DNA from: Thalia democratica
Lineage: Eukaryota
Direction: 5' to 3'
Assembly (NCBI GenBank): GCA_965202585.1
Contig: OZ241831.1
Span: 33,604,001-33,668,000 of the forward strand
DNA: 64,000 nt
In this document: positions 715 to 43,454 of the stretch, piece by piece
Position numbering within the stretch: the stretch's first letter is position 1
Layout of the letters: each line of letters starts with the position of its first letter
Translations under genes and position numbers: made by a program
Notes under the pieces: model-generated
What the model was told of the DNA's origin: nothing
The model's database searches: none
Seen by the model: the letters and a program-made list of their open reading frames with translations, nothing else

Positions 715-2475
715 TTAATACATGGGCGACTTGATACAACTGCACCAGAACTGGAGGTCTTCTTCCTTACCAACCATTCTTGACCTTCGACCCTCGATCA
801 TTCTTGGCCATTTTTAATCATCGACTTCCGACCATTCTTGTTTCTCCACATCGAACTCAGCATACTTGTAAAGGTGGTGACTTGAGAAAGCTACAATCTT
901 GTTCCCAATTGACAAACATTTCACACTACTCCAGAACCAGCCAGAACGGGGCATTCTTTTTTGAATGCGTGCGAAGACGTTACTAAAATAATCAAACACT
1001 TCACTACTACTCCTGTTGCTAAATACGTACAGCTTGCTTCCGATGCTCACTGAGTCATGACTGCATTTTTCTTCAAGCATTGGAGGCATTGGAGACCACG
1101 AATTGGAAAAGTGATCATAAACTTCAACTGTGTTTGTCAAATGTTTCTTGGTCTCTAATGCAACCACCAGTGACTACCAGTTTCCCGCAAAACACTGAGA
1201 ACGCAACATCTGACTTGTGTACTGACATCTCTGCTCTTTCCTCCCAGGTATTCAAATTGGGATCGTAGATTGTTAGTCTTCTGCCATTTGCATGGAATCC
1301 ACCTACTATATTAATCTTCCCAATGAAATTGCATATGCAAGCATGTTGGTTTAAGTATTTTTTACCTAACATTTTCTTTTCACTTATTTTTTTTGTCAAT
1401 GTTGAATAGGAAAATATGAAGTTAGAGCCCATAAAATAAATGACTTCGTCGATAAATACGCTTTTATAAATACTAGAGAGAAGTTCTAAAAAGCTTAGAA
1501 ATTTTTTACTTGCGTCGGATGACTTTATATTATCAAGTTTGTACAAACTAGTTCCTATATTAGAAATTATCTCAAAATTTTCCTGGTTGCAATACCGAGC
1601 TTGGTAACCAATAGAACTCGGGTCATATGTTTCTATTGATTTGTTATCAATTGCATTATTTATATACGTTTTACTGTCTGCGCAATTTGAAAACGAGCTG
1701 TTATCTGTTAACAAATTTTCTAAGCAAGCTTTTGACAACAATGGTAGACGAATTTGTTTTATCAGTTCTTTGGCAAATTTACCTCTTTGCTTGTGATTAT
1801 GCTTAATCCAGCTATCAACAGCAACTACAAGTTCCATTTCTGATGTTATTTCCAGTTCTGAAGTTGATAAAAGTTTTCTGAACGAGTCAAAACTTAAATC
1901 GAAGTGACTTTTGTTGGCTACTAAATAACAAAACCATCTTTCAATGCACTTAATTGCACATGTTTGAAAACGTGGTAGATTGAACAGTCTTGATACTTCA
2001 AAAAAGCATAAGGAATTCTGCACGTTAAATGATATTGCAACCATGCCTTTACCAACTTCTCAGATCTTCAGAGTTAAGCATTTTACCAACCTTAATAAAA
2101 CCTGTTCTTTCTAATTTCTGCAAGCTTTTCTTTTCTGTTAGTTAATTAAACGATAAAATTAAGCTCATGCTATACGCTAGAGGCAAAGTTATTAATGAAC
2201 AAAATATATAAACAAAATAAGAATTTGTGTTTTCAAAACCAACCTGTGTTATAAAACTTTAATAAGTTTTCTACAGTACTTCTGCTAGTTCTACTGGAGG
2301 CATTGTATTTGAAAGTTCTAACTATTTTATCTCCTACATCATTTCTCTTGCAAGAGTCAAGATGATTTAACAGCTTCTCACGTACATTATCGTTTACAGT
2401 TGAACTTCTGATTTTCTTCTTTTTAATTGGAAAGTTTTTTGAATCACTGTTACTTTGACGATTTCTTTCACCAAA
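715..2475 (-). pseudogene. G1: full-length BACK-Kelch (KLHL-like) pseudogene
   Basis: Colinear with G12. Exon 1 is 2475-2244, intron 2243-2135 (GT..AG), exon 2 2134-715. Lesions: ATG changed to TTT, a 2-nt deletion near 2060, an 8-nt deletion (ACTTGGCG) near 1147, and CAA>TAA at 814-816. Confidence 0.9.
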
Positions 2476-4767
2476 TTTTATGTAATAAATATAACTGCTA
2501 CAAAAACAGTTATAAGTTACAATTTTATATAAAAAAGATGGATAACTTTTTTAAGAAAGATTATTTTCTTAAATCAAGTTAAATAAATTCTTACAATTAT
2601 TGTTTTTTTCCAAGTAAAATAATTTTTAAGTATGAAATTTTAAACAGAATACTAAATAAATGACAAACCAGTTAAAAACTGGACTAAAAGAATATTTTTT
2701 TAGTAACACTATAGATGAAAATAATAATTCTTTTAGTTACATTAAAGACACCTTTACTTAAAGTTAGAAAGTAGTCTAACTTTGTGCCTTATTAAATAAT
2801 CTCCACAAATTTTATAGCTAACAATTGCAGAACTTTGTGGAGTTATGAATACAGAATTTTTAAAGGAGGCGTAGTTTGTTGTGAAAAAGTAATAAGCAAC
2901 AAGGAAGAAAGATCTGGTAAATAACAAGTTGATATTGAATCTTTTTAAAATTTTGCAAAATTTGCAATGAAAAAAATTTTTGAAAACCCCAGTTTAAACT
3001 TTCCACTTCTTTGTGAAAACCTCAAATTTTATCAAATAATATTAAAAAAAGCTTGTTAAAGTTAAAGAAAGTTTTATTGACGAACTTCTTAAATTGTATA
3101 ATAACGTTGAAAAAAAATTGTAAAGATACTTGAAGGTGTTTTAGGGAACACAAAATAAGTTCAATATATGTTGTTGCTTCCTGCTGCACACCAAACTCAA
3201 CTAGCTGCTTACATGAAACTGCCTATCACGCATTCGCCCCGTTGCATCAGTATTTAGTTTAAAACATTACATCAGATGATTCTTTTTGGCTCGTGCAATG
3301 AAGCGTATCTAACTCTAAATATTCTCAAAAACAATGACAATGCAAGGAATTTGCACTGTCATTACTATATATCAAAATCTTAAATACTTTGGTATATATG
3401 TCAAGTTCAAGGTTTTTGGAAGCGCTGAAGTGACCAAAAATTAGTTATATGTCTTCAGGTTGAATAATCAGCATAAAAATTTATGATAAACTGGTTTTGA
3501 GGTTTTCAAAATAACAAAAATCTAGTTTTGTAAAATAAAAAATAACAATTTGATAATATATTTTTAACAAAACTTAAAAAAGTTTTATTATGTTTATTAA
3601 AAAAAAGCTCAAGTTTTACAACAAAAAAAAATCACAATGGATTAAAAACTTATAAAAATGATATTGTAAAGCTAACTTACAAAACTAAAAAAAATATGGT
3701 GCTACAACTGTATACAAAAGCAAACATGTGTACAATTTTCATAGGATCGTTTGTTACTTTATTTATATTTTTTTGTTATATAAACCACTTCAAGTGGCTC
3801 TGAAGAATTGCGTCGATCTAGACGAAATACTGATAATTGAAAGTTAGTTTTCTACTACTTGCATTATGTATATGTAAGAAATACTGTATCAAACATTGTT
3901 TGTATTTATTTATTACGTCACTATATTTTAGAGTAAGATAATGAAATGAGAGATTATAGAGAGAAAGTAAACTTTTTTTCTTTTTTTAACCGGATGCACC
4001 TTAACAAAATAAAATCATATACCCACTAGTACTACATTATCTACCTACCATACATTTACTCAAAAAATTTGTTTAAAATGAAATTCCTGCATTTATTATT
4101 TATTTATCATTATTACAATAAAGAAAACATAATTAAAAATTACGCTTTAATACTAGCGATTTATTAAATGAATACGGTTAGAATTCGGATCTCGTTTAAA
4201 TTTAGGATTCTGTCGGATCCTAACAACTTAAGTTGTTTATAAAGTAAATATAATACAAGATACCACACTGTGGCGATTAAGCAATGCTAATTCTTTCATT
4301 AAAAAACATACATTCAACAACATACAATGCATTCAAGTAAACACATTTAACTCAAGAATATAAAAACAAAGGATAAAAACTAATATGTGCAATATTGTAT
4401 CTACAGGTAGAATTTAAAAAACGTATTTTATATAACTGTTCAAAAATATAGGCTTAATCGTTTATTAACAAAAGATCCTAGTGAAGTAACTTTACTGGAA
4501 CAGAAATATACAAATTGAACAGTAATCTTCCTTTATTGTACCAACATATGTTTCTGTGTGTTAACGAATCAACACACTTCAACTGGGTTCTTTAAAAAAT
4601 AATTACTGCAATGAAAGAATAGAAGCATAAAATAAAGTAGGTGTATACATGTTTTCATTAAAAAAAAATATTTTCTACAGACAATAGTTAATAATAGGTA
4701 AAATACTTAATATTCAATCCTACTGTTATAAAACTATATAATATTTGTGATTATTTAGTCTAAAATA

Positions 4768-5087
4768 AGTAAAGTAAACTGAAATACACAATAAAACAAC
4801 AAATCATAATATAAACAAACAACTCACTTAATGGGAAGAAAAACTGATTCAAATTTTACTGTTGTTAATGAATGAACGAAACAAATTCACCACATCTAAC
4901 AATCACGTCACAATGCAAATGAGGCCATCTCAACTATTCATTGTGACGTGATTGTTGGATGTGGTGACTGTGTTTATATCATTCATTAACAACAGTAAAA
5001 TGTGAATCAGTTTTTCTTTCTATTAACGTGAGTTGTTTGTTTATATTATGATTTGTTGTTTTATTGTGTAGTTCAGTTTACTTTACT
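4768..5087. repeat. Fold-back palindrome P1 (148-bp arms, 23-nt loop), MITE-like
   Basis: Left arm AGTAAAGTAAACTGAA...CACGTCACAATG (4768-4915) is the near reverse complement of 4939-5087. Loop CAAATGAGGCCATCTCAACTATT. Confidence 0.95.
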
Positions 5088-5340
5088 ATTGTATGTAGGT
5101 AGGTAAAAATTTAAAATGTTTGCTTAACAGTTTTACTGATTTTTCAACTTGTTTTATTGATTAAAAAAATTATTAAGTTCTACTTGCATAAAACTTAGTT
5201 TAATTTAACTATATCAAATGAACAATACTTTTGAAAAATGTTTTAAGTGCAAAATTGAGTTTAAAAACTTGCTTTTTCATGTTGCTTATGGTTACTTATG
5301 GACCAATAATTAGAATTTTTTTTTAAGTTTAAAAAGTCAT

Positions 5341-6643
5341 TTAAAAAAAAATAATTTGTATAAAATGAAATGATAAAATACTTTCTACCAAAAATAATAG
5401 AATTTTAAGATGTAGTATAAATTTGGAACCGTAGATTGTTAGTCTTCTGCAATTTGCATGGAATCCACCTACTATATTAATATTCCCCATGAAATTGCAT
5501 ATGCAAGCATGTTGGTTTAAGTACTTTTTACCTAACATTTTCTTTTCACTTATTTTTTTTGTCAATGTTGAATAGGAAAATATGAAGTTAGAGCCCATAA
5601 AATAAATGACTTCGTCAATAAACAAGCTTTTATAAATACTAGAATGAAGTTCTAAAAAGCTTGGAAATCTTTTACTTGCGTCGGAAGACTTTCTATTATC
5701 AAGTTTGTACAAATTAGTTCCTATATTAGAAATTATCTCAAAATTTTCCTGGTTGCAATACCGAGCTTGGTAACCAATAGAACACGGGTCATATGTATCT
5801 ACTGATTTGTTATCAAATGCATTATTTATATACGTTTTACTGTCTGCGCAATTTGAAAACGAGCTGTAATCTGTTAACAAATTTTCTAAGCAAGCTTTTG
5901 ACAACAATGGTAGACGAATTCGTTTAATCAGATCCTTGGCAAATTTACCTCTTTGCTTGTGATTATGCTTAATCCAGCTATCAACAGCAACTACAAGTTC
6001 CATTTCTGATGTTATTACCAGTTCTGAGCTTGATAAAAGTTTTCTGAACGAGTCAAAACTTAAATCGAAGTGATTTTTGTTGGCTACTAAATAACAAAAT
6101 CATCTTTCAGTGCACTTAATTGCACAAGTTTAAAAACGTGGTAGATTGAACAAACTTGATACTTCAAAAAAGCATAAGGAATTCTGCACGTTAAATGATA
6201 TTGCAACTATACCTTTACCAACTTTTTTCAAATCTTCAGAGTTAAGCACTTTACCAACCTTAATAAAACCTATTGTTTCTAATTTCTGCAAACTCTTCTT
6301 TTCTGTTAGTTAATTAAATGATGAAATTAAGTTCATGCTATACGCTAGAGGCAAAGTTATTAATGAACAAAATATTAAAACAAAATAAGAATTTGTGTAT
6401 TCATAACCAACCTTTGTTATAAAACTTTAATAAATTTTCTACAGTACTTCTGCTAGTTCTACTGGAGGCATTGTATTTGCAAGTTCTAACTATTTTATCT
6501 CCTTTATCATTTCTCTTGCAAGAGTCAAGATGATTTAACAGCTTCTCACGTACATTATCGTTTACAGTTGAACTTCTGGTTTTCTTCTTTTTAATTGGAA
6601 AGTTTTTTGAAGCACTGTTACTTTGACGTTTTCTTTCACCCAT
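5341..6643 (-). pseudogene. G2: 3'-truncated BACK-Kelch copy
   Basis: Exon 1 (6643-6412) is intact and the intron is present. Exon 2 has CAA>TAA after LPRF. Kelch homology stops at 5420 (TIYGSK|FILHL) and the frame reads on to 5341. Confidence 0.9.
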
Positions 6644-8945
6644 TTTTATGTAATAAATATAACTGCTGCAAAAACAGTTACAAGTTACAATTTTATATAA
6701 AAAAATATGGATAACTTTTTTAAGAAAGATTATTTTCTTAATCAAGTTAAATAAATTCTTAAAATTATTGTTTTTTCCAAGTAAAATAATTTTTAAATAT
6801 AAAATTTTAAACAGAATACTAAATAAATGACAAACCAGTTAAAAACTGGACTAAAAGAATATTTTTTTCGTAACACTATAGATGAAAATAATAATTCTTT
6901 TAGTTACATTAAAGACACCTTTACTTAAACTTAGAAAGTAGTCTAACTTTGTGCCTTATTAAATAATCTCCGCAAACTTTATAGCTAACAATTGCAGAAC
7001 TTTGTGGAGTTATGAATACAGAATTTTCAAAAGGAGGCGTAGTTTGTTGTGAAAAAGTAATAAGCAACAAGGAAGAAAGAACTGGTAAATAACAAGTTGA
7101 TATTGAATCTTTTTAAAATTTTGCAAAATTTGCAATGAAAAAAATTTTTGAAACCCCAGTTTAAACTTTCCACTTCTTTGTGAAAACCTCAAGTTTTATC
7201 AAATAATATTTAAAAAAAAGCTTGTTAAAGTTAAAGAAAGTTTTATTGAGGAACTTCATAAATTGTATAATAACGTTGAAAAAAAATTGTAAAGATACTT
7301 GAAGGTGTTTTAGGGAACACAAAATAAGTTCAATATATGTTGTTGCTTCCAGCTGCACACCAAACCTAACTAGCTGCTTACATGAAACTGCCTATCACGC
7401 ATTCGCCCCGTTGCATCAGTATTTAGTTTAAAACATTACATCAGATGATTCTCATTGGCTCGTGCAATGAAGCGTATCTAACTCTAAATATTCTCAAAAA
7501 CAATGACAATGCAAGGAATTTGCACTGTCATTACTATATATAAAAATCTTAAATACTTTAGCATTTTATGTCAAGTTCAAGGTTTTTGGAAGCGCTGAAG
7601 TGACCTAAAATTAGTTATATGTCTTCAGGTTGAATAATCAGCATAAAAATTTATGATAAACTGATTTTGAGGTTTTCAAAATAACAAAAATCTAGTTTTG
7701 TAAAATAAAAAATAAAAATTTGTTGATATATTTTTAACAAAACTTATAAAAACTTAAAAAAATTTTATTATGTTTATTAAAAAAAAAATTAAGTTTTCGA
7801 CAAAAAAAATTCACAATGGATTAAAAACTTGTAAAAATGATATTGTTAAGCTAACTTACAAAACTAAAAAAATATGGTGCTACAACTCTATACAAAAGCA
7901 AGCATGTGTACAATTTTCATAGGATCATTTTTTACTTTATTTATATTTTTTTTTATATAAACCACTTCAAGTGGCTCTGAAGAATTGCGTCGATCTAGAC
8001 GAAATACTGATAATTGAAAGTTAGTTTTCTACTACTTGCATGATGTATATGTAGGAAATACCGCATCAAACATTGTTAGTATTTATTTATTACGTCACTA
8101 TATTTTAGAGTAAGATAATGAAATGAGAGATTATAGAGAGAAAGTAAACTTTTTTTCTTTTTTTAACTGGATGCACCTTAACAAAATAAAATCATATACC
8201 CACTAGTACTACATTTTCTACCTACCATACATTTACTCAAAAAATTTGTTTAAAATGAAATTCCTGCATTTATTATTTATTTATCATTATTACAAAAAAG
8301 AAAACATAATTTAAAATTACGCTTTAATACTAGCGATTTATTAAATGAATACGGTTAGAATTCGGATCTCGTTTAAATTTAGGATTCTGTCGGATCCTAA
8401 CAATTTAATTTGTTTATAAAGTAAATATAATACAAGATACCACACTGTGGCGATTAAGCAATGCTAATTCTTTCATTAAAAAACATACATTCAACAACAT
8501 ACAATGCATTCAAGTAAACACATTTAAGTCAAGAATATAAAAACAAAGGACAAAAACTAATATGTGCAATATTGTATCTACAGGTAGAATTTAAAAACGT
8601 TTTGTATATAACTATTCAAAAATATAGGCTTAATTGTTTACTAACAAAAGATCCTAGTGAAGTAACTTTACTGGAACATAAATATAAACAAATTGAACAG
8701 TAATCTTCCTTTATTGTACCAACATATGTTTCTGTGTGTTAACGAATCAACACACTTCAACTGGGTTCTTTAAAAAATAATTACTGCAATGAAAGAATAG
8801 AAGCATAGAATAAAGTAGGTGTATACATGTTTTCATTAAAATAAATAATTTTCTACAGACAATAGTTAACAATAGGTAAAATACTTAATATTCAATCCTA
8901 CTGTTATAAAACTATATAATATTTGTGATTATTAAGTCTAAAATA

Positions 8946-9266
8946 AGTAAAGTAAACTGAAATACACAATAAAACAACAAATCATGATATAAACAAACAA
9001 CTCACGTTAATAGAAAAAAAAACTGATTCAAATTTTACTGTTGTTAATGAATGAACGAAACAAATTCACCACATCTAACAATCACGTCACAATGCAAATG
9101 AGGCCATCTCAACCATTCATTGTGACGTGATTGTTAGATGTGGTGACTGTGTTTCATTCATTCATTAACAACAGTAAAATTTGAATCAGTTTTTCTTTCT
9201 ATTAACGTGAGTTGTTTCTTTAAATTATGATTTGTTGTTTTATTGTGTAGTTCAGTTTACTTTACT
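8946..9266. repeat. Fold-back palindrome P2
   Basis: Same arms as P1, loop orientation A. Confidence 0.95.
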
Positions 9267-9519
9267 ATTGTATGTAGGTAGGTAAAAATTTAAAATGTTT
9301 GCTTAACTATTTTAATGATTTTTCAACTTGTTTTATTGATTTAAAAAATTATTAAGTTCTACTTGCATAAAACTTAGTTTAATTCAACTATATCAAATGA
9401 ACAATACTTTTGAAAAATGTTTTAAGTGCAAAATTGAGTTTAAAAACTTGCTTTTTCATGTTGCTTATGGTTACTTATGGACCAATAATTAGAATTTTTT
9501 TTTAAGTTTAAAAAGTCAT

Positions 9520-10822
9520 TTAAAAAAAAATTATTTGTATAAAATGAAATGATAAAATACTTTCTACCAAAAATAATAGAATTTTAAGATGTAGTATAAA
9601 TTTGGAACCGTAGATTGTTAGTCTTCTGCAATTTGCATGGAATCCACCTACTATATTAATATTCCCCATGAAATTGCATATGCAAGCATGTTGGTTTAAG
9701 TACTTTTTACCTAACATTTTCTTTTCACTTATTTTTTTTGTCAATGTTGAATAGGAAAATATGAAGTTAAAGCCCATAAAATAAATGACTTCGTCGATAA
9801 ACACGCTTTTAAAAGTACTAGAATGAAGTTCTAAAAAGCTTAGAAATCTTTTACTTGCGTCGGAAGACTTTCTATTATCAAGTTTGTACAAATTAGTTCC
9901 TATATTAGAAATTATCTCAAAATTTTCCTGGTTGCAATACCGAGCTTGGTAACCAATAGAACACGGGTCATATGTATCTACTGATTTGTTATCAAATGCA
10001 TTATTTATATACGTTTTACTGTCTGCGCAATTTGAAAACGAGCTGTAATCTGTTAACAAATTTTCTAAGCAAGCTTTTGACAACAATGGTAGACGAATTC
10101 GTTTAATCAGTTCTTTAGCAAATTTACCTCTTTGCTTTTGATTATGCTTAATCCATCTATCAACAGCAACTACAAGTTCTATTTCTGATGTTATTTCCAG
10201 TTCTGAGGTTGATAAAAGTTTTCTGAACGAGTCAAAACTTAAATCGAAGTGACTTTTATTGGCTACTAAATAACAAAACCATCTTTCAATGCACTTAATT
10301 GCACATGTTTGAAAACGTGGTAGATTGAACAGTCTTGATACTTAAAAAAAAGCATAAGGAATTTTGCACGTTAAATGATATTGCAACCATGCATTTACCA
10401 ACTTTTTTCAAATCTTCAGATGATAGCATTTTACCAACCTTAATAAAACCTATTGTTTCTAATTTCTGCAAACTCTTCTTTTCTGTTAGTTAATTAAACG
10501 ATAAAATTAAGCTCATGCTATACGCTAGAGGCAAAGTTATTAATGAACAAAACATATAAAAAAATAAGAATTTGTGTTTTCAAAACCAACCTTTGTTATA
10601 AAACTTTAATAAGTTCTCTACAGTACTTCTGCTAGTTCTACTGGAGGCATTGTATTTACAAGTTCTAACTATTTTATCTCCTACACCATTTCTCTTGCAA
10701 GAGTCAAGATGATTTAACAGCTTCTCTTGTACATTATCGTTTACAGTTGAACTTCTGATTTTCTTCTTTTCAATTGGAAAGTTTTTTGAATCACTGTTAC
10801 TTTGACGATTTCTTATACCCAA
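9520..10822 (-). pseudogene. G3: 3'-truncated BACK-Kelch copy
   Basis: Exon 1 ORF is 10580-10822. Exon 2 has GAA>TAA at LCFF* plus an extra base in the T-run, and the same truncation junction as G2. Confidence 0.9.
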
Positions 10823-13116
10823 TTTTATGTAATAAATATAACTGCTACAAAAACAGTTATAAGTTACAATTTTATATAAAAAAGATGGATAACTTTTTTA
10901 AGAAAGATTATTTTCTTAAATCAAGTTAAATAAATTCTTACAATTATTGTTTTTTTCCAAGTAAAATAATTTTTAACTATGAAATTTTAAACAGAATACT
11001 AAATAAATGACAAACCAGTTAAAAACTGGACTAAAAGAATATTTTTTTTAGTAACACTATAGATGAAAATAATAATTCTTTTAGTTACATTAAAGACACC
11101 TTTACTTAAAGTTAGAAAGTAGTCTAACTTTGTGCCTTATTAAATAATCTCCACAAATTTTATAGCTAACAATTGCAGAACTTTGTGGAGTTATGAATAC
11201 AGAATTTTCTAAAGGAGGCGTAGTTTGTTGTGAAAAAGTAATAAGCAATAAGGAAGAAAGAACTGGTAAATAACAAGTTGATATTGAATCTTTTTAAAAT
11301 TTTGCAAAATTTGCAATGAAAAAAATTTTTGGAAACCCTAGTTAAAACTTTCCACTTCTTTGTGAAAACCTCAAATTTTATCCAATAATATTAAAAAAAG
11401 CTTGTTAAAGTTAAAGAAAGTTTTATTGACGAACTTCTTAAATTGTATAATAACGTTGAAAAAAAATTGTAAAGATACTTGAAGGTGTTTTAGGGAACAC
11501 AAAATAAGTTTAATATATGTTGTTGCTTCCAGCTGCACACCAAACACAACTAGCTGCTTACATGATACTGCCTATCACGCATTCGCCCCGTTGCATCAGT
11601 ATTTAGTTTAAAACATTACATCAGATGATTCTCATTGGCTTGTGCAATGAAGCGTATCTAACTCTAAATATTCTCAAAAAAAATGACAATGCAAGGAATT
11701 TGCACTGTCATTACTATATATCAAAATCTTAAATACTTTAGCATTATATGTCAAGTTCAAGGTTTTTGGAAGCGCTGAAGTGACCAAAAATTAGTTATAT
11801 GTCTTCAGGTTGAATAATCAGCATAAAAATTTATGATAAACTGGTTTTGAGGTTTTCAAAATAACAAAAATCTAGTTTTGTAAAATAAAAAATAACAATT
11901 TGATAATATATTTTTAACAAAACTTAAAAAAGTTTTATTATGTTTATTAAAAAAAAGCTCAAGTTTTACAACAACAAAAAATCACAATGGATTAAAAACT
12001 TATAAAAATGATATTGTAAAGCTAACTTACAAAACTAAAAAAATATGGTGCTACAACTCTATACAAAAACAAGCATGTGTACAATTTTCATAGGATCACT
12101 TTTTACTATATTTATATTTTTTTTATATAAACCACTTCAAGTGGCTCTGAAGAATTGCGTCGATCTAGACGAAATACTGATAATTGAAAGTTAGTTTTCT
12201 ACTACTTGCATTAAGTATATGTAGGAAATACTGTATCAAACATTGTTTGTATTTATTTATTACGTCACTATATTTTAGAGTAAGATAATGAAATGAGAGA
12301 TTATAGAGAGAAAGTAAACTTTTTTTCTTTTTTTAACCGGATGCACCTTAACAAAATAAAATCATATACCCACTAGTACTACAATTTCTACCTACCATAC
12401 ATTTACTCAAAAAAATTGTTTAAAATGAAATTCCTGCATTTATTATTTATTTATCATTATTACAAAAAAGAAAACATAATTAAAAATTACGCTTTAATAC
12501 TAGCGATTTATTAAATGAATACGGTTAGAATTCGGGTCTCGTTTAAATTTAGGATTCTGTCGGATCCTAACAACTTAAGTTGTTTATAAAGTAAATATAA
12601 TACAAGATACCACACTGTGGCGATTAAGCAATGCTAATTCTTTCATTAAAAAACATACATTCAACAACATACAATGCATTCAAGTAAACACATTTAACTC
12701 AAGAATATAAAAACAAAGGATAAAAACTAATATGTGCAATATTGTATCTACAGGTAGAATTTAAAAAACGTATTGTATATAACTGTTCAAAAATATAGGC
12801 TTAATCGTTTACTAACAAATGATCCTAGTGAAGTAACTTTACTGGAACATAAATAAAAACAAATTGAACAGTAATCTTCCTTTATTGTACCAACATATGT
12901 TTCTGTGTGTTAACGAATCAACACACTTCAACTGGGTTCTGTAAAAAATAATTACTGCAATGAAAGAATAGAAGCATAGAATAAAGTAGGTGTATACATG
13001 TTTTCATTAAAATAAAATATTTTCTACAGACGATAGTTAATAATAGGTAAAATACTTAATATTCAATCCTACTGTTACAAAACTATAGAATATTTGTGAT
13101 TATTAAGTCTAAAATA

Positions 13117-13437
13117 AGTAAAGTAAACTGAAATACACAATAAAACAACAAATTTCAATATAAACAAACAACTCACGTTAATGGAAAGAAAAACTGATTC
13201 AAATTTTACTGTTGTTAATGAATGAACGAAACAAACTCACCACATCTAACAATCACGTCACAATGAATGGTTGAGATGGCCTCATTTGTAATGTGACGTG
13301 ATTGTTAGATGTGGTGAGTGTGTTTCATTCATTCATTAACAACAGTAAAATTTGAATCAGTTTTTCTTTCTATTAACATGAGTTGTTTGTTTATATTATG
13401 ATTTGTTGTTTTATTGTGTAGTTCAGTTTACTTTACT
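13117..13437. repeat. Fold-back palindrome P3 (loop inverted)
   Basis: Loop 13266-13288 reads AATGGTTGAGATGGCCTCATTTG, the reverse complement of the P2 loop. Confidence 0.95.
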
Positions 13438-13770
13438 ATTGTATATAGGTAGGTAAAAATTTAAAATGTTTGCTTAACTGTTTTACTGATTTTTCAACTT
13501 GTTTTATTGATTAAAAAAATTATTAAGTTCTACTTGCATAAAACTTAGTTTAATTCAACTATATCAAATGAACAATACTTTTGAAAAATGTTTTAAGTGC
13601 AAAATTGAGTTTAAAAACTTGCTTTTTCACGTTGCTTATGGTTACTTATGGACCAATAATTAGAATTTTTTTTTGAATTTTAAAAAGTCAACTTTTAAAA
13701 AATAATTTGTATAAAATGAAATGATAAAATACTTTCTTTCAAAAATAATAGATTTTTAAGATGTAGTATA

Positions 13771-14993
13771 AATTTGGGACCGTAGATTGTTAGTCTTCTT
13801 CAATTTGCATGGAATCCACCTACTATATTAATCTTCCCCATGAAATTGCATATGCAAGCATGTTGATTTAAGTACTTTTTACCTAACATTTTTTTTCACT
13901 TATTTTTATTGTCAATGTTGAATAGGAAAATATGAAGTTAGAGCCCATAAAATAAATGACTTCGTCGATAAACAAGCTTTTATAAATACTAGAATGAAGT
14001 TCTAAAAAGCTTAGAAATCTTTTACTTGCGTCGGAAGACTTTCTATTATCAAGTTTGTACAAACTAGTTCCTATATTAGAAATTATCTCAAAATTTTCCT
14101 GGTTGCAATACCAAGCTTGGTAACCAATAGAACTCGGGTCATATGTATCTACTGATTTGTTATAAATTGCATTATTTATATACGTTTTACTGTCTGCGCA
14201 ATTTGAAAACGAGCTGTAATCTGTTAACAAATTTTCTAAGCAAGCTTTTGACAACAATGGTAGACGAATTTGTTTTATCAGTTTTTTGGCAAATTTACCT
14301 CTTTGCTTGTGATTATGCTTAATCCAGCTATCAACAGCAACTACAAGTTCCATTTCTGATGTTATTTCCAGTTCTGAGGTTGATAAAAGTTTTTTGAACG
14401 AGTCAAGACTTAAATCGAAGTGACTTTTGTTGGCTACTAAATAACAAAACCATCTTTCAATGCACTTAATTGCACATGTTTGAAAACGTGGTAGATTGAA
14501 CAGTCTTGATACTTAAAAAAAGCATAAGGAATTCTGCACGTTAAATGAAATTGCAACCATGCCTTTACCAACTTTTTTCAAGTCTTCAGAGTTAAGCATT
14601 TTACCAACCTTAATAAAACCTATTGTTTCTAATTTCTGCAAACTCTTCTTTTCTGTTAGTTAATTAAATGATGAAATTAAGTTCATGCTATACGCTAGAG
14701 GCAAAGTTATTAATGAACAAAATATTAAAACAAAATAAGAATTTGTGTTTTCAAAACCAACCTTTGTTATAAAACTTTAAAAAGTTTTCTACAGTACTTC
14801 TGCTAGTTCTACTGGAGGCATTGTATTTGCAAGTTCTAACTATTTTTTCTCCTACATCATTTCTCTTCCAAATATCAAGATGATTTAACAGCTTTTCACG
14901 TACATTAACGTTTACAGTTGAACTTCTGGTTTTCTTCTTTTTAATTGGAAAGTTTTTTGAAGCACTGTTACTTTGACGTTTTCTTTCACCCAT
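13771..14993 (-). pseudogene. G4: 3'-truncated BACK-Kelch copy
   Basis: Exon 1 ORF is 14751-14993. Exon 2 has GAA>TAA at LCFF*, a frameshift at SEKKC*, and the shared truncation junction at 13771. Confidence 0.9.
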
Positions 14994-17097
14994 TTTTATG
15001 TAATAAATATAACTGCTGCAAAAACAGTTATAAGTTACAATTTTATATAAAAAAATATGGATAACTTTTCTAAGAAAGATTATTTTCTTAAATCAAGTTA
15101 AATAAATTCTTACATTTATTGTTTTTTCCAAGTAAAATAATTTTTAAGTATAAAATTTTAAACTGAAAATTAAATAAATGACAAACCAGTTAAAAACTGG
15201 ACTAAAAGAATATTTTTTTTGTAACACTATAGATGAAAATAATAGTTCTTTTAGTTACATTAAAGACACCTTTACTTAAACTTAGAAAGTAGTCTAACTT
15301 TGTGCCTTATTAAATAATCTCCACAAATTTTATAGTTAACAATTGCAGAACTTTGTGGAGTTATGAATACAGAATTTTCAAAAGGAGGCGTAGTTTGTTG
15401 TGAACTTCATAAATTGTATAATAACGTTGAAAAAAAATTGTAAAGATACTTGAAGGTGTTTTAGGGAACACAAAATAAGTTCACTATATGTTGTTGCTTC
15501 CAGCTGCACACCAAACTCAACTAGCTGCTTACATGAAACTGCCTATCACGCATTCGCCCCGTTGCATCAGTATTTAGTTTAAAACATTACATCAGATGAT
15601 TCTCATTGGCTCGTGCAATGAAGCGTATCTAACTCTAAATATTCTCAAAAACAATGACAATGCAAGGAATTTGCACTGTCATTATTACATATCAAAATCT
15701 TAAATACTTTAGCATTTTATGTCAAGTTCAAGGTTTTTGGAAGCGCTGAAGTGACCAAAAATTAGTTATATGTCTTCAGGTTGAATAATCAGCATAAAAA
15801 TTTATGATAAACTGATTTTGAGGTTTTCAAAATAACAAAAATCTAGTTTTGTAAAATAAAAAATAAAAATTTGTTGATATATTTTTAACAAAACTTATAA
15901 AAACTTTAAAAAGTTTTTTATGTTTATTAAAAAAAAGCTCAAGTTTTACAACAAATAAAAATCACAATGGATTAAAAACTTATAAAAATGATATTGTAAA
16001 GCTAACTTACAAAACTAAAAAAATATGGTGCTACAACTCTATACAAAAGCAAGCATGTGTACAATTTTCATAGGGTCATTTTTTACTTTATTTATATTTT
16101 ATTTTATATAAACCACTTCAAGTGGCTCTGAAGAATTGCGTCGATCTAGACGAAATACTGATAATTGAAAGTTAGTTTTCTACTACTTGCATTATGTATA
16201 TGTAGGAAATACTGCATCAAACATTGTTTGTATTTATTTATTACGTCACTATATTTTAGAGTAAGATAATAAAATGAGAGATTATAAAGAGAAAGTAAAC
16301 TTTTTTTCTTTTTTTAACTGGATGCGCCTTAACAAAATAAAATCATATACCCACTAGTACTACATTATCTACCTACCATACATTTACTCAAAAAAATTGT
16401 TTAAAATGAAATTCCTGCATTTATTATTTATTTATCATTATTACAAAAAAGAAAACATAATTAAAAATTACGCTTTAATACTAGCAACTTATTAAATAAA
16501 TACGGTTAGAATTCGGATCTCGTTTAAATTTAGGATTCTGTCGGATCCTAACAATTTAATTTGTTTATAAAGTAAATATAATACAAGATACCACACTGTG
16601 GCGATTAAGCAATGCTAATTCTTTCATTAAAAAACATACATTCAACAACATACAATGCATTCAAGTAAACACATTTAAGTAAAGAATATAAAAACAAAGG
16701 ATAAAAACTAATATGTGCAATATTGTATCTACAGGTAGAATTTAAAAAACGTATTGTATATAACTGTTCAAAAATATAGGCTTAATCGTTTACTAACAAA
16801 TGATCCTAGTGAAGTAACTTTACGGGAACATAAATAAAAACAAATTGAACAATAATCTTCCTTTATTGTACCAACATATGTTTCTGTGTGTTAACGAATC
16901 AACACACTTCAACTGGGTTCTTCAAAAAATAATTACTGCAATGAAAGAATAGAAGCATAGAATAAAGTAGGTGTATACATGTTTTCATTAAAATAAAATA
17001 TTTTCTACAGACAATAGTTAATAATAGGTAAAATACTTAATATTCAATCCTACTGTTATAAAACTATAGAATATTTGTGATTATTAAGTCTAAAATA

Positions 17098-17418
17098 AGT
17101 AAAGTAAACTGAAATACACAATAAAACAACAAATCATAATATAAACAAACAACTCACGATAATGGAAAGAAAAACTGATTCAAATTTTACTGTTGTTAAT
17201 GAATGAACGAAACAAATTCATCACATCTAACAATCACGTCACAATGCAAATGAGGCCATCTCAACCATTCATTGTGACGTGATTGTTAGATGTGGTGACT
17301 GTGTTTCATTCATTCATTAACAACAGTAAAATTTGAATCAGTTTTTCTTTCTATTAACGTGAGTTGTTTCTTTACATTATGATTTGTTGTTTTATTGTGT
17401 AGTTCAGTTTACTTTACT
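17098..17418. repeat. Fold-back palindrome P4
   Basis: Loop orientation A at 17247-17269. Confidence 0.95.
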
Positions 17419-17660
17419 ATTGTATGTAGGTAAGTAAAAATTTAAAATGTTTGCTTAAGTGTTTTACTGATTTTTCAACTTGTTTTATTGATTAAAAAAA
17501 TTATTAAGTTCTACTTGCATAAAACTTAGTTTAATTCAACTATACCAAATGAACAATACTTTTGAAAAATGTTTTAAGTGCAAAATTGAGTTTAAAAACT
17601 TGCTTTTTCACGTTGCTTATGGTTACTTATGCACCAATAATTAGAATTTTTTTTTGAAGT

Positions 17661-18977
17661 TTAAAAAGTCAACTTTTTAAAAATAATTTGTATAAAATGA
17701 AATGATAAAATACTTTCTATCAAAAATAATAGAACTTTAAGATGTAGTATAAATTTGGGACCGTAGATTGTTAGTCTTCTGCAATTTGCATGGAATCCAC
17801 CTACTATATTAATCTTCCCCATGAGATTGCATATGCAAGCATGTTGGTTTAAGTGCTTTTTACCTAACAATTTCTTTTCACTTATTTTTTTGTCAATGTT
17901 GAATAGGAAAATATGAAGTTAGAGCCCATAAAATAAATGACTTCGTCGATAAACACGCTTTTATAAATACTAGAGTGAGGCTCTAAAAAGCTTAGAAATT
18001 TTTTACTTGCGTCGGATGACTTTTTATTATCAAGTTTGTACAAACTAGTTCCTATATTAGAAATTATCTCAAAAAATTCCTGGTTGCAATACCAAGTTTG
18101 GTAACCAATAAAACTCGGGTCATATGTATCTACTGATTTGTTATCAACTGCATTATTTATATACGTTTTACTGTCTGCGCAATTTTAAAACGAGCTGTAA
18201 TCTGTTAACAAATTTTCTAAGCAAGCTTTTGACAACAATGGTAGGCGAATTCGTTTAATCAGTTCCTTGGCAAATTTACCTCTTCGCTTGTAATTATGCT
18301 TAATCCAGCTATCAACAGCAACTACAAGTTCCATTTCTGATGTTATTTCCAGTTCTGAGGTTGATAAAAGTTTTCTGAACGATTCAAAACTTAAATCGAA
18401 GTGACTTTTGTTGGCTACTAAATAACAAAACCATCTTTCAATGCACTTAATTGCACATGTTTGAAAACGTGGTAGATTGAACAGTCTTGATACTTAAAAA
18501 AAGCATAAGGAATTCTGCACGTTAAATGATATTGCAACCATGCCTTTACCAACTTTTTTCAAATCTTCAGAGTTAAGCATTTTACCAACCTTAATAAATC
18601 CTATTGTTTCTAATTTCTGCAAACTCTTCTTTTCTGTTAGTTAATTAAATGATAAAATTAAGTTAATGCTATACGCTAGAGGCAAAGCTATTAATGAACA
18701 AAATATTAAAACAAAATAAGAATTTGTGTTTTCAAAACCAACATTTTTTATAAAACTTTAATAAGTTTTCTACAGTACTTCTGCTAGTTCTACTGGAGGC
18801 ATTGTATTTGCAAGTTCTAACTATTTTATCTCCTTTATCATTTCTCTTGCAAGAGTCAAGATGATTTAACAGCTTCTCACGTACATTATCGTTTACAGTT
18901 GAACTTCTGGTTTTCTTCTTTTTAATTGGAAAGTTTTTTGAAGCATTGTTACTTTGACGACGTTTTCTTTCACCCAT
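17661..18977 (-). pseudogene. G5: 3'-truncated BACK-Kelch copy
   Basis: Exon 1 has an in-frame 3-nt insertion (ERKRRQ). Exon 2 has GAA>TAA at LCFF*, further stops, and the shared truncation junction at 17752. Confidence 0.9.
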
Positions 18978-21283
18978 TTTTATGTAATACATATAACTGC
19001 TGCAAAAACAGTTATAAGTTACAATTTTATATAAAAAAATATGGATAACTTTTTTAAGAAAGATTATTTTCTTAAATCAAGTTAAACAAATTCATACAAT
19101 TATTGTTTTTTCCAAGTAAAATAATTTTTAAGTATAAAATTTTAAACAGAGTACTAAATAAATGACAAACCAGTTAAAAACTGAACTAAAAGAATATTTT
19201 TTTTCGTAACACTATAGATGAAAATAATAATTCTTATAGTTACATTAAAGACACCTTTACTTAAACTTAGAAAGTAGTCTAACTTTGTGTCTTATTAAAT
19301 AATCTCCACAAATTTTATAGCTAACAATTGCAGAACTTTGTGGAGTTATGAATACAGAACTTTCAAAAGGAGGCGTAGTTTGTTGTGAAAAAGTAATAAG
19401 CAACAAGGAAGAAAGAACTGGTAAATAACAAGTTGATATTGAATCTTTTTAAAATTTTGAAAAATTTGCAATGAAAAAATTTTTTGGAAACCCCAGTTTA
19501 AACTTTCAAATTCTTTGTGAAAACCTCAAGTTTTATCAAATAATATTAAAAAAAGCTTGTTAAAGTTTAAGAAAGTTTTATTGAGGAACTTCTTAAATTT
19601 TATAATAACGTTGAAAAAAATTTGTAAAGATACTTGAAGGTGTTTTAGGGAACACAAAATAAGTTTAATATATGTTGTTGCTTCCAGCTGCACACCAAAC
19701 TCAACTAGCTGCTTACATGAAACTGCCTATCACGCATTCGCCCCGTTGCATCAGTATTTAGTTTAAAACATTACATCAGATGATTCTCATTGGCTCGTGC
19801 AATGAAGCGTATCTAACTCTAAATATTCTCAAAAACAATGACAATGCAAGGAATTTGCACTGTCATTACTATGTATCAAAATCTTAAATACTTTAGCATT
19901 ATATGTCAAGTTCAAGGTTTTTGGAAGCGCTGAAGTGACCAAAAAGTAGTTATATGTCTTCAGGTTGAATAATCGGCATAAAAATTTATGATAAACTGGT
20001 TTTGAGGTTTTCAAAATAACATAAATCTAGTTTTGTAAAATAAAAAATAAAAACTTGTTAATATATTTTTAACAAAACTTATGAAAACTTAAAAAAGTTT
20101 TATTATGTTTATTAAAAAAAAAAGCTCAAGATTTACAACAAAAAAAATCACAATGGATTAAAAACTTATAAAAATGATATTGTAAAGCTAACTTACAAAA
20201 CTAAAAAAATATGGTGCTACAACTCTATACAAAAGCAAACATGTGTACATTTTTCATAGGATCACTTTTTACTTTATTTATACTTTTTTTTATATAAACC
20301 ACTTCAAGTGGCTTTGAAGAATTGCGTCGATCTAGACGAAATACTGATAATTGAAAGTTAGTTTTCTACTACTTGCATTATGTATATGTAGGAAATACTG
20401 TATCAAACATTGTTTGTATTTATTTATTACGTCACTATATTTTAGAGTAAGATAATAAAATGAGAGATTACAGAGAGAAAGTATTTTTTTTTTCTTTTTT
20501 TAACTGGATGCACCTTAACAAAATAAAATCATATACCCACTAGTACTACATTATCTACCTATCATACATTTACTCAAAAAATTTGTTTAAAATTAAATTC
20601 CTGCATTTATTATTTATTTATCATTATTACAAAAAAGAAAACATAATTAAAAATTACGCTTTAATACTTGCGATTTATTATATAAATACGGTTAGAAGTC
20701 GGGTCTCGTTTAAATTTAGGATTCTGTCGGATCCTAACAATTTTAGTTGTTTATAAAGTAAATATAATACAAGATACCACACTGTGGCGATTAAACAATT
20801 TTAATTCTTTCATTAAAAAACATACATTCAACAACATACAATGCATTCAAGTAAACACATTTAACTCAAGAATATAAAAACAAAGGATAAAAACTAATAT
20901 GTGCAATATTGTATCTACAGGTAGAATTTAAAAAACGTATTGTATATAACTGTTCAAAAATATAGGCTTAATCGTTTACTAACAAATGATCCTAGTGAAG
21001 TAACTTTACTGGAACATAAATAAAAACAAATTGAACAGTAATCTTCCTTTATTGTACCAACATATGTTTCTGTGTGTTAACGAATCAACACACTTCAACT
21101 GGGTTCTGTAAAAAATAATTACTGCAATGAAAGAATAGAAGCATAGAATAAAGTAGGTGTATACATGTTTTCATTAAAATAAAATATTTTCTACAGACGA
21201 TAGTTAATAATAGGTAAAATACTTAATATTCAATCCTACTGTTACAAAACTATAGAATATTTGTGATTATTAAGTCTAAAATA

Positions 21284-21604
21284 AGTAAAGTAAACTGAAA
21301 TACACAATAAAACAACAAATTTCAATATAAACAAACAACTCACGTTAATGGAAAGAAAAACTGATTCAAATTTTACTGTTGTTAATGAATGAACGAAACA
21401 AACTCACCACATCTAACAATCACGTCACAATGAATGGTTGAGATGGCCTCATTTGTAATGTGACGTGATTGTTAGATGTGGTGAGTGTGTTTCATTCATT
21501 CATTAACAACAGTAAAATTTGAATCAGTTTTTCTTTCTATTAACATGAGTTGTTTGTTTATATTATGATTTGTTGTTTTATTGTGTAGTTCAGTTTACTT
21601 TACT
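21284..21604. repeat. Fold-back palindrome P5 (loop inverted)
   Basis: Loop 21433-21455 is inverted as in P3. Confidence 0.95.
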
Positions 21605-22048
21605 ATTGTATATAGGTAGGTAAAAATTTAAAATGTTTGCTTAACTGTTTTACTGATTTTTCAACTTGTTTTATTGATTAAAAAAATTATTAAGTTCTAC
21701 TTGCATAAAACTTAGTTTAATTCAACTATATCAAATGAACAATACTTTTGAAAAATGTTTTAAGTGCAAAATTGAGTTTAAAAACTTGCTTTTTCACGTT
21801 GCTTATGGTTACTTATGGACCAATAATTAGAATTTTTTTTTGAATTTTAAAAAGTCAACTTTAAAAAATAATTTGTATAAAATGAAATGATAAAATACTT
21901 TCTTTCAAAAATAATAGATTTTTAAGATGTAGTATAAATTTGGGACCGTAGATTGTTAGTCTTCTTCAATTTGCATGGAATCCACCTACTATATTAATCT
22001 TCCCCATGAAATTGCATATGCAAGCATGTTGATTTAAGTACTTTTTAC

Positions 22049-23159
22049 CTAGCATTTTTTTTCACTTATTTTTATTGTCAATGTTGAATAGGAAAATATG
22101 AAGTTAGAGCCCATAAAATAAATGACTTCGTCGATAAACAAGCTTTTATAAATACTAGAATGAAGTTCTAAAAAGCTTAGAAATCTTTTACTTGCGTCGG
22201 AAGACTTTCTATTATCAAGTTTGTACAAACTAGTTCCTATATTAGAAATTATCTCAAAATTTTCCTGGTTGCAATACCAAGCTTGGTAACCAATAGAACT
22301 TGGGTCATATGTATCTACTGATTTGTTATAAATTGCATTATTTATATACGTTTTACTGTCTGCGCAATTTGAAAACGAGCTGTAATCTTTTAACAAATTT
22401 TCTAAGCAAGCTTTTGACAACAATGGTAGACGAATTTGTTTTATCAGTTTTTTGGCAAATTTATCTCTTTGCTTGTGATTATGCTTAATCCAGCTATCAA
22501 CAGCAACTACAAGTTCCATTTCTGATGTTATTTCCAGTTCTGAGGTTGATAAAAGTTTTTTGAACGAGTCAAGACTTAAATCGAAGTGACTTTTGTTGGC
22601 TACTAAATAACAAAACCATCTTTCAATGCACTTAATTGCACATGTTTGAAAACGTGGTAGATTGAACAGTCTTGATACTTCAAAAAAGCATAAGGAATTT
22701 TGCACGTTAAATGATATTGCAACCATGCATTTACCAACTTTTTTCAAATCTTCAGATGATAGCATTTTACCAACCTTAATAAAACCTATTGTTTCTAATT
22801 TCTGCAAACTCTTCTTTTCTGTTAGTTAATTAAATGATGAAATTAAGTTCATGCTATACGCTAGAGGCAAAGTTATTAATGAACAAAATATTAAAACAAA
22901 ATAAGAATTTGTGTTTTCAAAACCAACCTTTGTTATAAAACTTTAAAAAGTTTTCTACAGTACTTCTGCTAGTTCTACTGGAGGCATTGTATTTGCAAGT
23001 TCTAACTATTTTATCTCCTACATCATTTCTCTTGCAAATATCAAGATGATTTAACAGCTTTTCACGTACATTAACGTTTACAGTTGAACTTCTGGTTTTC
23101 TTCTTTTTAATTGGAAAGTTTTTTGAAGCACTGTTACTTTGACGTTTTCTTTCACCCAT
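22049..23159 (-). CDS. G6: spliced open ORF, 333 aa, basic N-terminus + BACK domain, no Kelch propeller
   Basis: Exon 1 23159-22928 (232 nt, ends AAAG|GTTGG), 109-nt intron 22927-22819 (CTAACAG|), exon 2 22818-22049. Joining gives ...FYNKEKKSLQKLETIGF... in frame with the 252-aa track ORF. It ends at the frameshift SEKKC*. Expression is unknown. Confidence 0.6.
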
Positions 23160-25162
23160 TTTTATGTAATAAATATAACTGCTGCAAAAACAGTTATAAG
23201 TTACAATTTTATATAAAAAAATATGGATAACTTTTCTAAGAAAGATTATTTTCTTAAATCAAGTTAAATAAATTCTTACATTTATTGTTTTTTCCAAGTA
23301 AAATAATTTTTAAGTATAAAATTTTAAACTGAAAATTAAATAAATGACAAACCAGTTAAAAACTGGACTAAAAGAATATTTTTTTTGTAACACTATAGAT
23401 GAAAATAATAGTTCTTTTAGTTACATTAAAGACACCTTTACTTAAACTTAGAAAGTAGTCTAACTTTGTGCCTTATTAAATAATCTCCACAAATTTTATA
23501 GTTAACAATTGCAGAACTTTGTGGAGTTATGAATACAGAATTTTCAAAAGGAGGCGTAGTTTGTTGTGAACTTCATAAATTGTATAATAACGTTGAAAAA
23601 AAATTGTAAAGATACTTGAAGGTGTTTTAGGGAACACAAAATAAGTTCACTATATGCTGTTGCTTCCAGCTGCACACCAAACTCAACTAGCTGCTTACAT
23701 GAAACTGCCTATCACGCATTCGCCCCGTTGCATCAGTATTTAGTTTAAAACATTACATCAGATGATTCTCATTGGCTCGTGCAATGAAGCGTATCTAACT
23801 CTAAATATTCTCAAAAACAATGACAATGCAAGGAATTTGCACTGTCATTACTATATATCAAAATCTTAAATACTTTAGCATTTTATGTCAAGTTAAAGGT
23901 TTTTGGAAGCGCTGAACTGACCAAAAATTAGTTATATGTCTTCAGGTTGAATAATCAGCATAAAAATTTATGATAAACTGATTTTGAGGTTTTCAAAATA
24001 ACAAAAATCTAGTTTTGTAAAATAAAAAATAAAAATCTGTTGATATATTTTTAACAAAACTTATAAAAACTTTAAAAAGTTTTATTATGTTTATTAAAAA
24101 AAAGCTCAAGTTTTACAACAAATAAAAATCACAATGGATTAAAAACTTATAAAAATGATATTGTAAAGCTAACTTACAAAACTAAAAAAATATGGTGCTA
24201 CAACTCTATACAAAAGCAAGCATGTGTACAATTTTCATAGGATCATTTTTTACTTTATTTATATTTTATTTTATATAAACCACTTCAAGTGGCTCTGAAG
24301 AATTGCGTCGATCTAGACGAAATACTGATAATTGAAAGTTAGTTTTCTACTACTTGCATTATGTATATGCAGGAAATACTGTATCAAACATTGTTTGTAT
24401 TTATTTATTACGTCACTATATTTTAGAGTAAGATAATGAAATGAGAGATTATAGAGAGAAAGTAAACTTTTTTTCTTTTTTTAACTGGATGCACCTTAAC
24501 AAAATAAAATCATATACCCACTAGTACTAAATTATCTACCTACCATACATTTACTCAAAAAATTTGTTTAAAATGAAATTCCTGCATTTATTATTTATTT
24601 ATCATTATTACAAAAAAGAAAACATAATTAAAAATGACGCTTTAATAATAGCGATTTATTAAATGAATACGGTTAGAATTCGGATCTCTTTTAAACTTAG
24701 GATTCTGTCGGATCCTAACAACTAAAGTTGTTTATAAAGTAAATATAGTACAAGATACCACACTGTGGCGATTAAGCAATGCTAATTTTTTCACTAAAAA
24801 AAATACATTCAACAACATACAATGCATTCAAGTAAACACATTTAACTCAAGAGTATAAAAACAAAGGATAAAATTTAATATGTGCAATATTGTATCTACA
24901 GGTAGAATTTAAAAAACGTATTGTATATAACTTATTGTATATAATTTTCTGTGTGTTAACGAATCAACAAACTTCAACTGGGTTCTGTAAAAAATAATTA
25001 CTGCAATGAAAGAATAGAAGCATAGAATAAAGTAGGTGTATACGTGTTTTCATTAAAATAAAACATTTTCTACAGACAATAGTTAATAATAGGTAAAATA
25101 CTTAATATTCAATCCTACTGTTACAAAACTATATAATATTTGTGATTATTAAGTCTAAAATA

Positions 25163-25482
25163 AGTAAAGTAAACTGAAATACACAATAAAACAACAAATC
25201 ATAATATAAACAAACAACTCACGTTAATCGAAAGAAAAACTGATTCAAATTTTACTGTTGTTAATGAATAAACGAAACAAATTCACCACATCTAACAATC
25301 ACATCACAATAAAAATGAGGCCATCTCAACCATTCATTGTGACGTGATTGTCGGATGTGGTGACTGTGTTTCATTCATTCATTAACAACAGTAAAATTTG
25401 AATCAGTTTTCTTTCTATTAACGTGAGTTGTTTGTTTATGTTATGATTTGTTGTTTTATTGTGTAGTTCAGTTTACTTTACT
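25163..25482. repeat. Fold-back palindrome P6
   Basis: Same arms, orientation A, slightly diverged. Confidence 0.93.
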
Positions 25483-25736
25483 ATTGTATGTAGGTAGGTA
25501 AAAATTTAAAATGTTTGCTTAACTGTTTTACTGATTTTTCAACTAGTTTTATTGATTAAAAAAATTATTAAGTTCAACTTGCATAAAACTTAGTTTAATT
25601 CAACTATATCAAATGAACAATACTTTTGAAAAATGATTTAAGTGCGAAATTGAGTTTAAAAACTTGCTTTTTCATGTTGCTTATGGTTACTTATTGACCA
25701 ATAATTAGAATTTTCTTTTGAAGTTTAAAAAGTCAA

Positions 25737-26296
25737 AGAAATTATCTCAAAATTTTCCTGGTTGCAATACCGAGCTTGGTAACCAATAGAACTCGGGTCA
25801 TGTGTATCTACTGATTTGTTATCAATTGCATTATTTATATACGTTTTACTGTCTGCGCAATTTGAAAACGAGTTGTAATCTGTTAACAAATTTTCTAAGC
25901 AAGCTTTGACAACAATGGTAGACGAATTCGTTTAATCAGTTCCTTGGCAAATTTACCTCTTTGCTTGTAATTATGCTTAATCCAGCTATCAGCAGCAACT
26001 ACAAGTTCCATTTCTGATGTTATTTCCAGTTCTGAGCTTGATAAAAGTTTTCTGAACGAGTCAAGACTTAAATCGAAGTGACTTTTGTTGGCTACTAAAT
26101 AACAAAACCATCTTTCAATGCACTTAATTGCACAAGTTTAAAAACGTGGTAGATTGAACAAACTTGATACTTCAAAAAAGCATAAGGAATTTTGCACGTT
26201 AAATGATATTGCAACCATTCCTTTACCAACTTTTCTCAAATCTTCAGAGTTAAGCATTTTACCAACCTTAAAAAAACCTATTGTATCTAATTTCTG
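25737..26296 (-). pseudogene. G7: internal exon-2 fragment terminating array A
   Basis: BACK-coding sequence only. The left side is fused to unit spacer (AAGTCAA|AGAAATT) and the right side to PLE 3' sequence at ~26297. Carries the LPRF* stop. Confidence 0.85.
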
Positions 26297-43432: not shown

Positions 43433-43454
43433 CAGTTACATTTATTTAATATAA

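Follow-up and report, generated by a model that had tools for sequence, protein, structure and literature searches.

A 64,000-nt stretch of the Thalia democratica genome (contig OZ241831.1, here C7; G000:C7:33604001–33668000; hereafter, the window) carries many copies, some full-length and others truncated, of a two-exon gene that encodes a BACK domain followed by Kelch repeats. Judged by the junctions, lesions and divergence of these copies, the region is likely to be a decaying array of truncated Kelch pseudogenes and not a regulatory system. The genome, 801 Mb in size, is AT-rich (~26% GC), and no runs of N interrupt the 64,000 nt of the window. We also examined the flanks, 50 kb on the left side and 40 kb on the right, and mapped both window and flanks onto window positions 1–5418, whose coordinates are marked 'ref' below. 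Copies are called G1 to G13. Lesions are numbered by coding-sequence (cds) nucleotide or by codon of exon 2, and those of exon 1 are named separately.

Array layout and the shared junction

Self-comparison of the window and its flanks in the manner of a dot plot, a check proposed with an earlier sequence-only reading of this DNA, reveals head-to-tail units as well as duplicated and inverted blocks. Combined with mapping on ref, it resolves six head-to-tail units of ~4.17 kb that are 95–97% identical and lie on the minus strand. Unit 1 (1254–5418) comprises the first 872 nt of exon 2 together with the intron, exon 1 and the upstream region, and in addition a foldback that resembles a miniature inverted-repeat transposable element (MITE), and a fragment of a dispersed repeat. 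Units 2 to 6, which carry copies G2 to G6, follow at 5419–9597, 9598–13769, 13770–17750, 17751–21935 and 21936–25735.

The junction between units is the feature that most truncated copies share. The junction 16-mer has exactly seven matches in the window, with ~0.23 expected by chance: five on the minus strand (5409, 9588, 13760, 17741 and 21926) and two on the plus strand (40497 and 56139). An alignment of the seven junctions with the three full copies bears out, to the base, an observation of the sequence-only reading on G2–G6, G9 and G11. All seven leave the Kelch frame at one position, exon-2 cds nt 872 (codon ~291), within the first Kelch blade, and at this position exon 2 is joined to a point ~3.3 kb upstream of the gene (5418/5419 in unit 2). 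Two further window copies, G7 (25737–26296) and G8 (30149–30852), end elsewhere. The whole genome contains ten instances of the junction: nine at the C7 locus and one on the unplaced contig C517, whose copy belongs to a further paralogous block (~95.6% identity) and is not a haplotig. The single origin that had been proposed for the junction is upheld, since the join is identical in all ten genomic copies and the truncated copies form one clade in a maximum-likelihood tree of the shared 872 nt (88% ultrafast bootstrap, UFboot). Head-to-tail units and one junction of single origin give the locus the features of a tandem array.

The propeller part of the gene (ref 293–1253) is found in the window only at 1–1253 (G1), ~44679–45651 (G10) and 59665–60917 (G12), the same three copies to which it had earlier been assigned. 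The flanks add one near-full decayed copy and two truncated copies with the shared junction. A truncated copy followed by a full one was described before on both strands, and we find the same: G9 then G10 on the plus strand, and on the minus strand G2 then G1, and G13 then G12, where G13 is a further truncated copy that adjoins G12 just beyond the window edge. The position of the full copy at the 3′ end is a matter of geometry, because the amplified segment has one breakpoint inside the gene. As for its recurrence, two blocks of the form truncated copy plus partial unit, then full copy plus train (−4423 to 4311 and 55312–64000), are mutual duplicates, and the block of G9 and G10 is an inverted copy. 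The truncated/full blocks were re-duplicated, and the recurrent 3′ full copy therefore reflects one arrangement that was copied.

Gene model, coding state and constraint

We took as reference for the gene model five intact paralogs at C6:14.29–14.36 Mb, to which exon 2 of the array is 94–96% identical. By comparison with these paralogs, exon 1 is a conserved 232-nt segment with a GT donor that encodes a Lys-rich leader of 77 amino acids; an intron of ~108 nt follows, and then a single large exon 2 with an open frame of 472 codons. Pfam, which was run on exon 1 and exon 2 separately and not on the joined two-exon protein, places the BACK and Kelch matches on the minus strand of the window. The BACK domain (PF07707, E = 1.2e-16) covers residues 41–138 of the exon-2 open reading frame (ORF) of G12, and matches to Kelch_1 (PF01344), Kelch_2, Kelch_6 and Kelch_FKB95 cover ~residues 237–456 in G12 and in an intact paralog; BACK and the Kelch repeats are encoded within one exon. 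No BTB domain is matched by Pfam in the exon-2 ORF of G12, in exon 2 of the intact paralog, or in exon 1, and a short 'VENLLKFYNK'-type motif recalls the end of a BTB domain. The KLHL family of BTB-BACK-Kelch ubiquitin-ligase adaptors has the same succession of a BACK domain and a C-terminal Kelch-repeat propeller, but its proteins carry an N-terminal BTB/POZ domain in the position that the 77-amino-acid Lys-rich leader occupies here. To our knowledge, neither a two-exon BACK-Kelch family without detectable BTB in a tunicate-type genome nor this locus has been described.

Disabling lesions, either premature stops or frameshifts, are present in all 11 truncated copies. A TAA at codon 54 is common to seven copies and a TAA at codon 43 to four; both fall at the very start of BACK (codons 41–138), and one or the other is found in every truncated copy except G6 and G11. 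Within the minus-strand train, G2 has an intact exon 1, followed by an exon 2 that is stopped at codon 54 (TAA) and again at codon 64 (TGA). The start codon of G3 is changed from ATG to TTG, and this copy also has TAA at codon 43 and a 1-nt insertion. G4, which lacks ref 2885–3082, combines TAA at codon 43 with a 1-nt deletion at nt 750, and G5 is stopped by TAA at codon 43 and again at codon 146, besides having lost 1 nt at nt 732. The frame of G6 is broken by a 1-nt deletion at nt 750; with exon 1 intact and BACK open, it could be the only truncated copy still able to encode the BACK domain.

Exon 1 and the promoter region are missing from six copies: G7, G8, G9, G11, G13 and the truncated copy to the left of the window. 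In five of these six, the sequence passes from ref 2150, a point 15 nt before the acceptor, directly into a 130-bp piece taken from ref 3726–3858; in G9 this join stands where exon 1 would be. All six have lesions in exon 2 as well. G7, a minus-strand fragment of cds 4–564 in which ref 5339 is joined to ref 1562, has TAA at codon 54, and G8, on the plus strand and cut at ref 1449, has TAA at codon 43. G9 (39603–40502, plus strand) ends at the shared junction and is interrupted twice, by TAA at codon 54 and by TGA at codon 213. G11 (55466–57980, plus strand) lacks nt 1–192 and extends over cds 193–872 to the shared junction at 56144/56145, where a partial unit (ref 5418 down to 3579) begins; it has two stops and two 1-nt deletions. 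TAA at codon 54 is also found, along with other lesions, in G13 and in the truncated copy to the left of the window. Because the same point mutations are unlikely to recur, the shared stop alleles point to spread by duplication or conversion, and therefore some of the amplification, at the least, involved units that had already died.

The three copies that the sequence-only reading had called full deserve the name for their full-length exon 2 and not as genes, for none is intact; their first exons, like that of G3, are damaged. G1 (exon 2 at 715–2135 and the 232-nt exon 1 with its Lys-rich leader at 2244–2475, minus strand) has an 8-bp deletion at cds nt 979, in the propeller, and TTT in place of its start ATG. 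G10 (unit at 40503–45651, plus strand, with exon 2 at 43807–45225) has five stops, four of them in frame within exon 2 and the fifth in exon 1. G12 (unit at 59665–64000, minus strand) is the sole window copy with an intact exon 2, a 472-amino-acid ORF at 60383–61801. In its exon 1 (~61922–62152) a run of six A is shortened to five, a 1-nt deletion that breaks the two-exon frame; all 12 other copies have six. A related claim, that AATAAA is kept in full copies only, holds for the gene's own hexamer, 33 nt past the stop, but not for the hexamer in general: each unit has 13 of them on its gene strand, with examples 260 and 353 nt past the junction, an abundance that is uninformative in DNA of 26% GC.

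Sequence divergence reinforces the evidence from lesions. Array exons diverge by 4.0–4.8% versus 3.2–4.3% in non-coding DNA, whereas among the five intact C6 paralogs the exons diverge by 2.9–3.7% versus 6.4–7.7%. By this comparison, exons of the array are conserved no better than its non-coding DNA. The ratio of nonsynonymous to synonymous substitution rates (dN/dS) is 0.68 in the truncated copies versus 0.45 in the intact paralogs over the same codons, and 0.19 in the propeller part of the intact paralogs. Taken as a whole, these values show relaxed, essentially neutral evolution of the array. No Rfam families and no tRNA genes were found in the window.

These results change the picture drawn by the sequence-only reading, which saw many modules of promoter, exon 1 and BACK feeding one complete gene, and a possible system of dosage, decoys or small RNA rather than simple decay. 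Frames are broken, six copies have no exon 1, and the full copies are themselves damaged, which argues against such modules. The disabling mutations, the shared stops and the lack of exon constraint are features of decay.

Origin and spread of the truncated unit

The upstream side of the join (ref 5092–5418) comes from the interior of a dispersed repeat, 327 bp out of more than 6.5 kb; copies of this repeat lie at L015:1418–8000, at L017:1081–6832 and at six other loci (L016, L018–L022) and are 87–91% identical. The two copies inspected contain no ORF of at least 150 amino acids. Dispersed matches began exactly at the breakpoint, and we considered whether it was a transposon terminus or a product of alternative transposition, but eight aligned copies stay homologous across it; the breakpoint is therefore internal to the repeat. 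Adjoining the fragment, at the same place in every unit, is the MITE-like foldback (~515 bp at ~4425–5092), which has an internal inverted repeat of ~330 bp (4764–5093) that is 88–92% self-complementary, and which has thousands of candidate copies genome-wide at ~89–92% identity.

At C6:71.145 Mb and C6:62.15 Mb lie paralogous arrays, ~90% identical to the unit, in which the sequence continues across the breakpoint. Their order is ref 1–5418, ~480 bp more of the dispersed repeat, two to three copies of a 430-bp satellite, the 3′ flank, and the next gene. Because these arrays keep the un-rearranged layout, the comparison shows the C7 junction to be a ~3.4-kb deletion, or an equivalent partial duplication, relative to the C6-type layout, with the satellite, the 3′ flank and the propeller being the material lost. 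The letters at the join have microhomology of 1–3 nt only.

The C6 arrays (G000:C6:71145001–71175000; C6:62150001–62170000) are rearranged in their own way: among their contents are partial units without a gene, fragments of exons, and copies that carry stops. The 430-bp satellite, which the sequence-only reading had taken for a 'Pol III unit', is part of the ancestral spacer between BACK-Kelch genes. It is present in the window at 45758–47079 and 48830–50163, and also at ~−14250 to −8170 from the window start; neither Rfam nor ARAGORN gave a match in these satellite arrays.

That the truncated unit spread by unequal crossing-over, as had been suggested, agrees with the head-to-tail units and with a two-unit higher-order repeat of 8.15 kb (97.2% identity), and the inverted segmental blocks refine this picture. 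The internal branches of the tree are short and the terminal branches long (0.012–0.024), a shape that fits an old copying burst followed by independent drift. Units 4 and 6 are exceptional. They are 98.5% identical in exon 2, form part of a younger two-unit duplication (8.15 kb), and share a 197-bp deletion (ref 2885–3082) and the 1-nt deletion at cds nt 750. The TAA at codon 43 is present in unit 4 and not in unit 6, in which a 5′ tract resembling those of G12 and G3 is likely a gene-conversion patch. Site patterns are mosaic, as in the 5′ tract common to G12, G3 and G6, and this mosaicism shows that copies have exchanged sequence by recombination or gene conversion.

Duplication extends to the rest of the region. 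Direct or inverted segmental duplications of 82–97% identity pair 26300–30852 with 35152–40306, 47127–47951 with 53374–54153, and 51032–52570 with 59539–57990, and the entire ~90-kb stretch is a patchwork of duplicated blocks.

We arrive at the following history. The ancestral state, as displayed by the C6 arrays, was a tandem series of full-length two-exon BACK-Kelch genes, each unit consisting of the gene, ~3.3 kb of upstream DNA, the dispersed-repeat fragment, the 430-bp satellite and the 3′ flank that belongs to the gene after it. One illegitimate join at 1–3 nt of microhomology fused exon-2 nt 872 of one gene to the interior of the dispersed-repeat fragment that precedes the following gene. 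The resulting 4.17-kb unit was then probably amplified by unequal crossing-over, and blocks bearing such units were probably re-duplicated, some of them inverted, with gene conversion between copies. The frames are broken, part at least of the spread came after breakage, as the shared stop alleles show, and the copies have since drifted neutrally by ~4–5%. On such a history the layout could be explained without a protein product or a dedicated RNA function.

Alternative explanations and known systems

Several observations weigh against interpreting the region as a decaying pseudogene array. G6 keeps an open exon 1 and an open BACK, and G12 keeps an open exon 2 of 472 amino acids. The homopolymer frameshift in exon 1 of G12 could be an assembly error, and the window would then contain one working gene. 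The two stop alleles fit the tree poorly, and recombination or gene conversion must be invoked to accommodate them. Finally, the dN/dS contrast (0.68 versus 0.45) is modest and on its own weakly discriminating.

It is highly improbable that the array is an artefact in which mis-assembly expanded one or two units. The available runs consist of short unitigs, which offer no long-read check of copy number, and related copies lie on the unplaced contigs C517 and C265; however, the units differ by 3–5%, stops and indels private to some of them (such as the 197 bp deleted from units 4 and 6) set them apart, and three independent samples or studies contain unit sequence. Because of this divergence and these private indels, the units are distinct and not one unit repeated by the assembler. 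A search for sequencing runs that match the stretch found none recorded as RNA; the three samples or studies, which are DNA-like, contain 33–43% of the words sampled from the stretch. When four runs were mapped as unitigs of 150–300 nt, X1, X2 and X4 covered all bins and X10 essentially nothing, which shows that the unit sequence exists in independent samples, and one X1 contig probably bridges the junction, with a variant at 5427, 47 letters from the contig end. Equally far-fetched is a role for the truncated units as sources of short proteins, composed of the Lys-rich leader and BACK, that act as dominant-negative decoys of full-length Kelch adaptors. Such proteins would be compatible with G6, in which exon 1 is open and exon 2 is open through BACK, and with a dN/dS below 1 in the truncated copies, but in ten of the 11 truncated copies either exon 1 is missing or a stop precedes BACK or falls where it begins, G4 (the 98.5% near-twin of G6) has TAA at codon 43, and the exons are unconstrained relative to non-coding DNA. 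The earlier suggestion of dosage or decoy effects, as far as proteins would exert them, is unsupported in view of premature stops or frameshifts in all truncated copies and of exons that diverge as fast as non-coding DNA.

A source of small or antisense RNA is also unlikely. Under this explanation, units in both orientations would form double-stranded RNA, and the resulting small interfering RNAs (siRNAs) or Piwi-interacting RNAs (piRNAs) would tune the ~95% identical C6 paralogs. Inverted copies do lie within 4–40 kb of one another (for example 25737–26296 and 30179–30739, 95.7% identity), the 94–96% identity of exon 2 to the five intact C6 paralogs would suit such targeting, four units keep exon 1 and the upstream region, and the principle is documented in other systems, for which pseudogene-derived endo-siRNA and hairpin-RNA loci serve as comparison (PMC3616710; PMC2708354). 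Yet neutral duplication accounts in full for the layout, conservation of the upstream regions does not exceed that of other non-coding parts, and many units have no promoter region. A further pseudogene small-RNA system for comparison is the Su(Ste)-type locus. By analogy with it, the direct and inverted trains might give rise to siRNAs or piRNAs that repress the five C6 paralogs in trans, a Su(Ste)/Stellate-like dosage brake on an expanding Kelch family in a tunicate; we consider this quite unlikely. Endo-siRNA, hairpin and Su(Ste) loci share with the C7 array the presence of direct and inverted pseudogene fragments that are ~95% identical to intact paralogs elsewhere. The likeness to all these loci is structural only, with 95–96% identity between inverted blocks and 94–96% to the C6 paralogs.

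Decay of a tandem pseudogene array, the reading that we favor, has ample precedent. Partial-gene tandem duplicates and pseudogene arrays that arise by illegitimate recombination and then unequal crossing-over are established genome biology. Known tandem pseudogene arrays have the same head-to-tail units, the same single exon breakpoint with only the terminal copy complete, and the same shared disabling mutations, mosaic gene conversion and neutral divergence; nothing essential differs here. The resemblance to D4Z4/DUX4 is only superficial. There, the most distal unit alone yields stable mRNA, because it extends to a polyadenylation signal in the flank (PMC3203905). Both loci are kilobase-scale tandem arrays with the gene's proper 3′ end attached to the last unit only. 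In contrast to D4Z4, where each unit has a complete ORF and the polyadenylation signal is distal only, the units described here end at exon-2 nt 872 with broken frames, and AATAAA is frequent inside them.

Taken alone, the finding matters little, and its use for annotation is that these copies are to be flagged as pseudogenes. As an example it is clean and datable: one illegitimate exon join, spread by unequal crossing-over, inverted segmental duplication and gene conversion. That the full copy lies at the 3′ end is a geometric consequence of duplication and not a sign of design. If transcripts or small RNAs from the array were found, the locus could become a test case for pseudogene-based regulation in tunicates.

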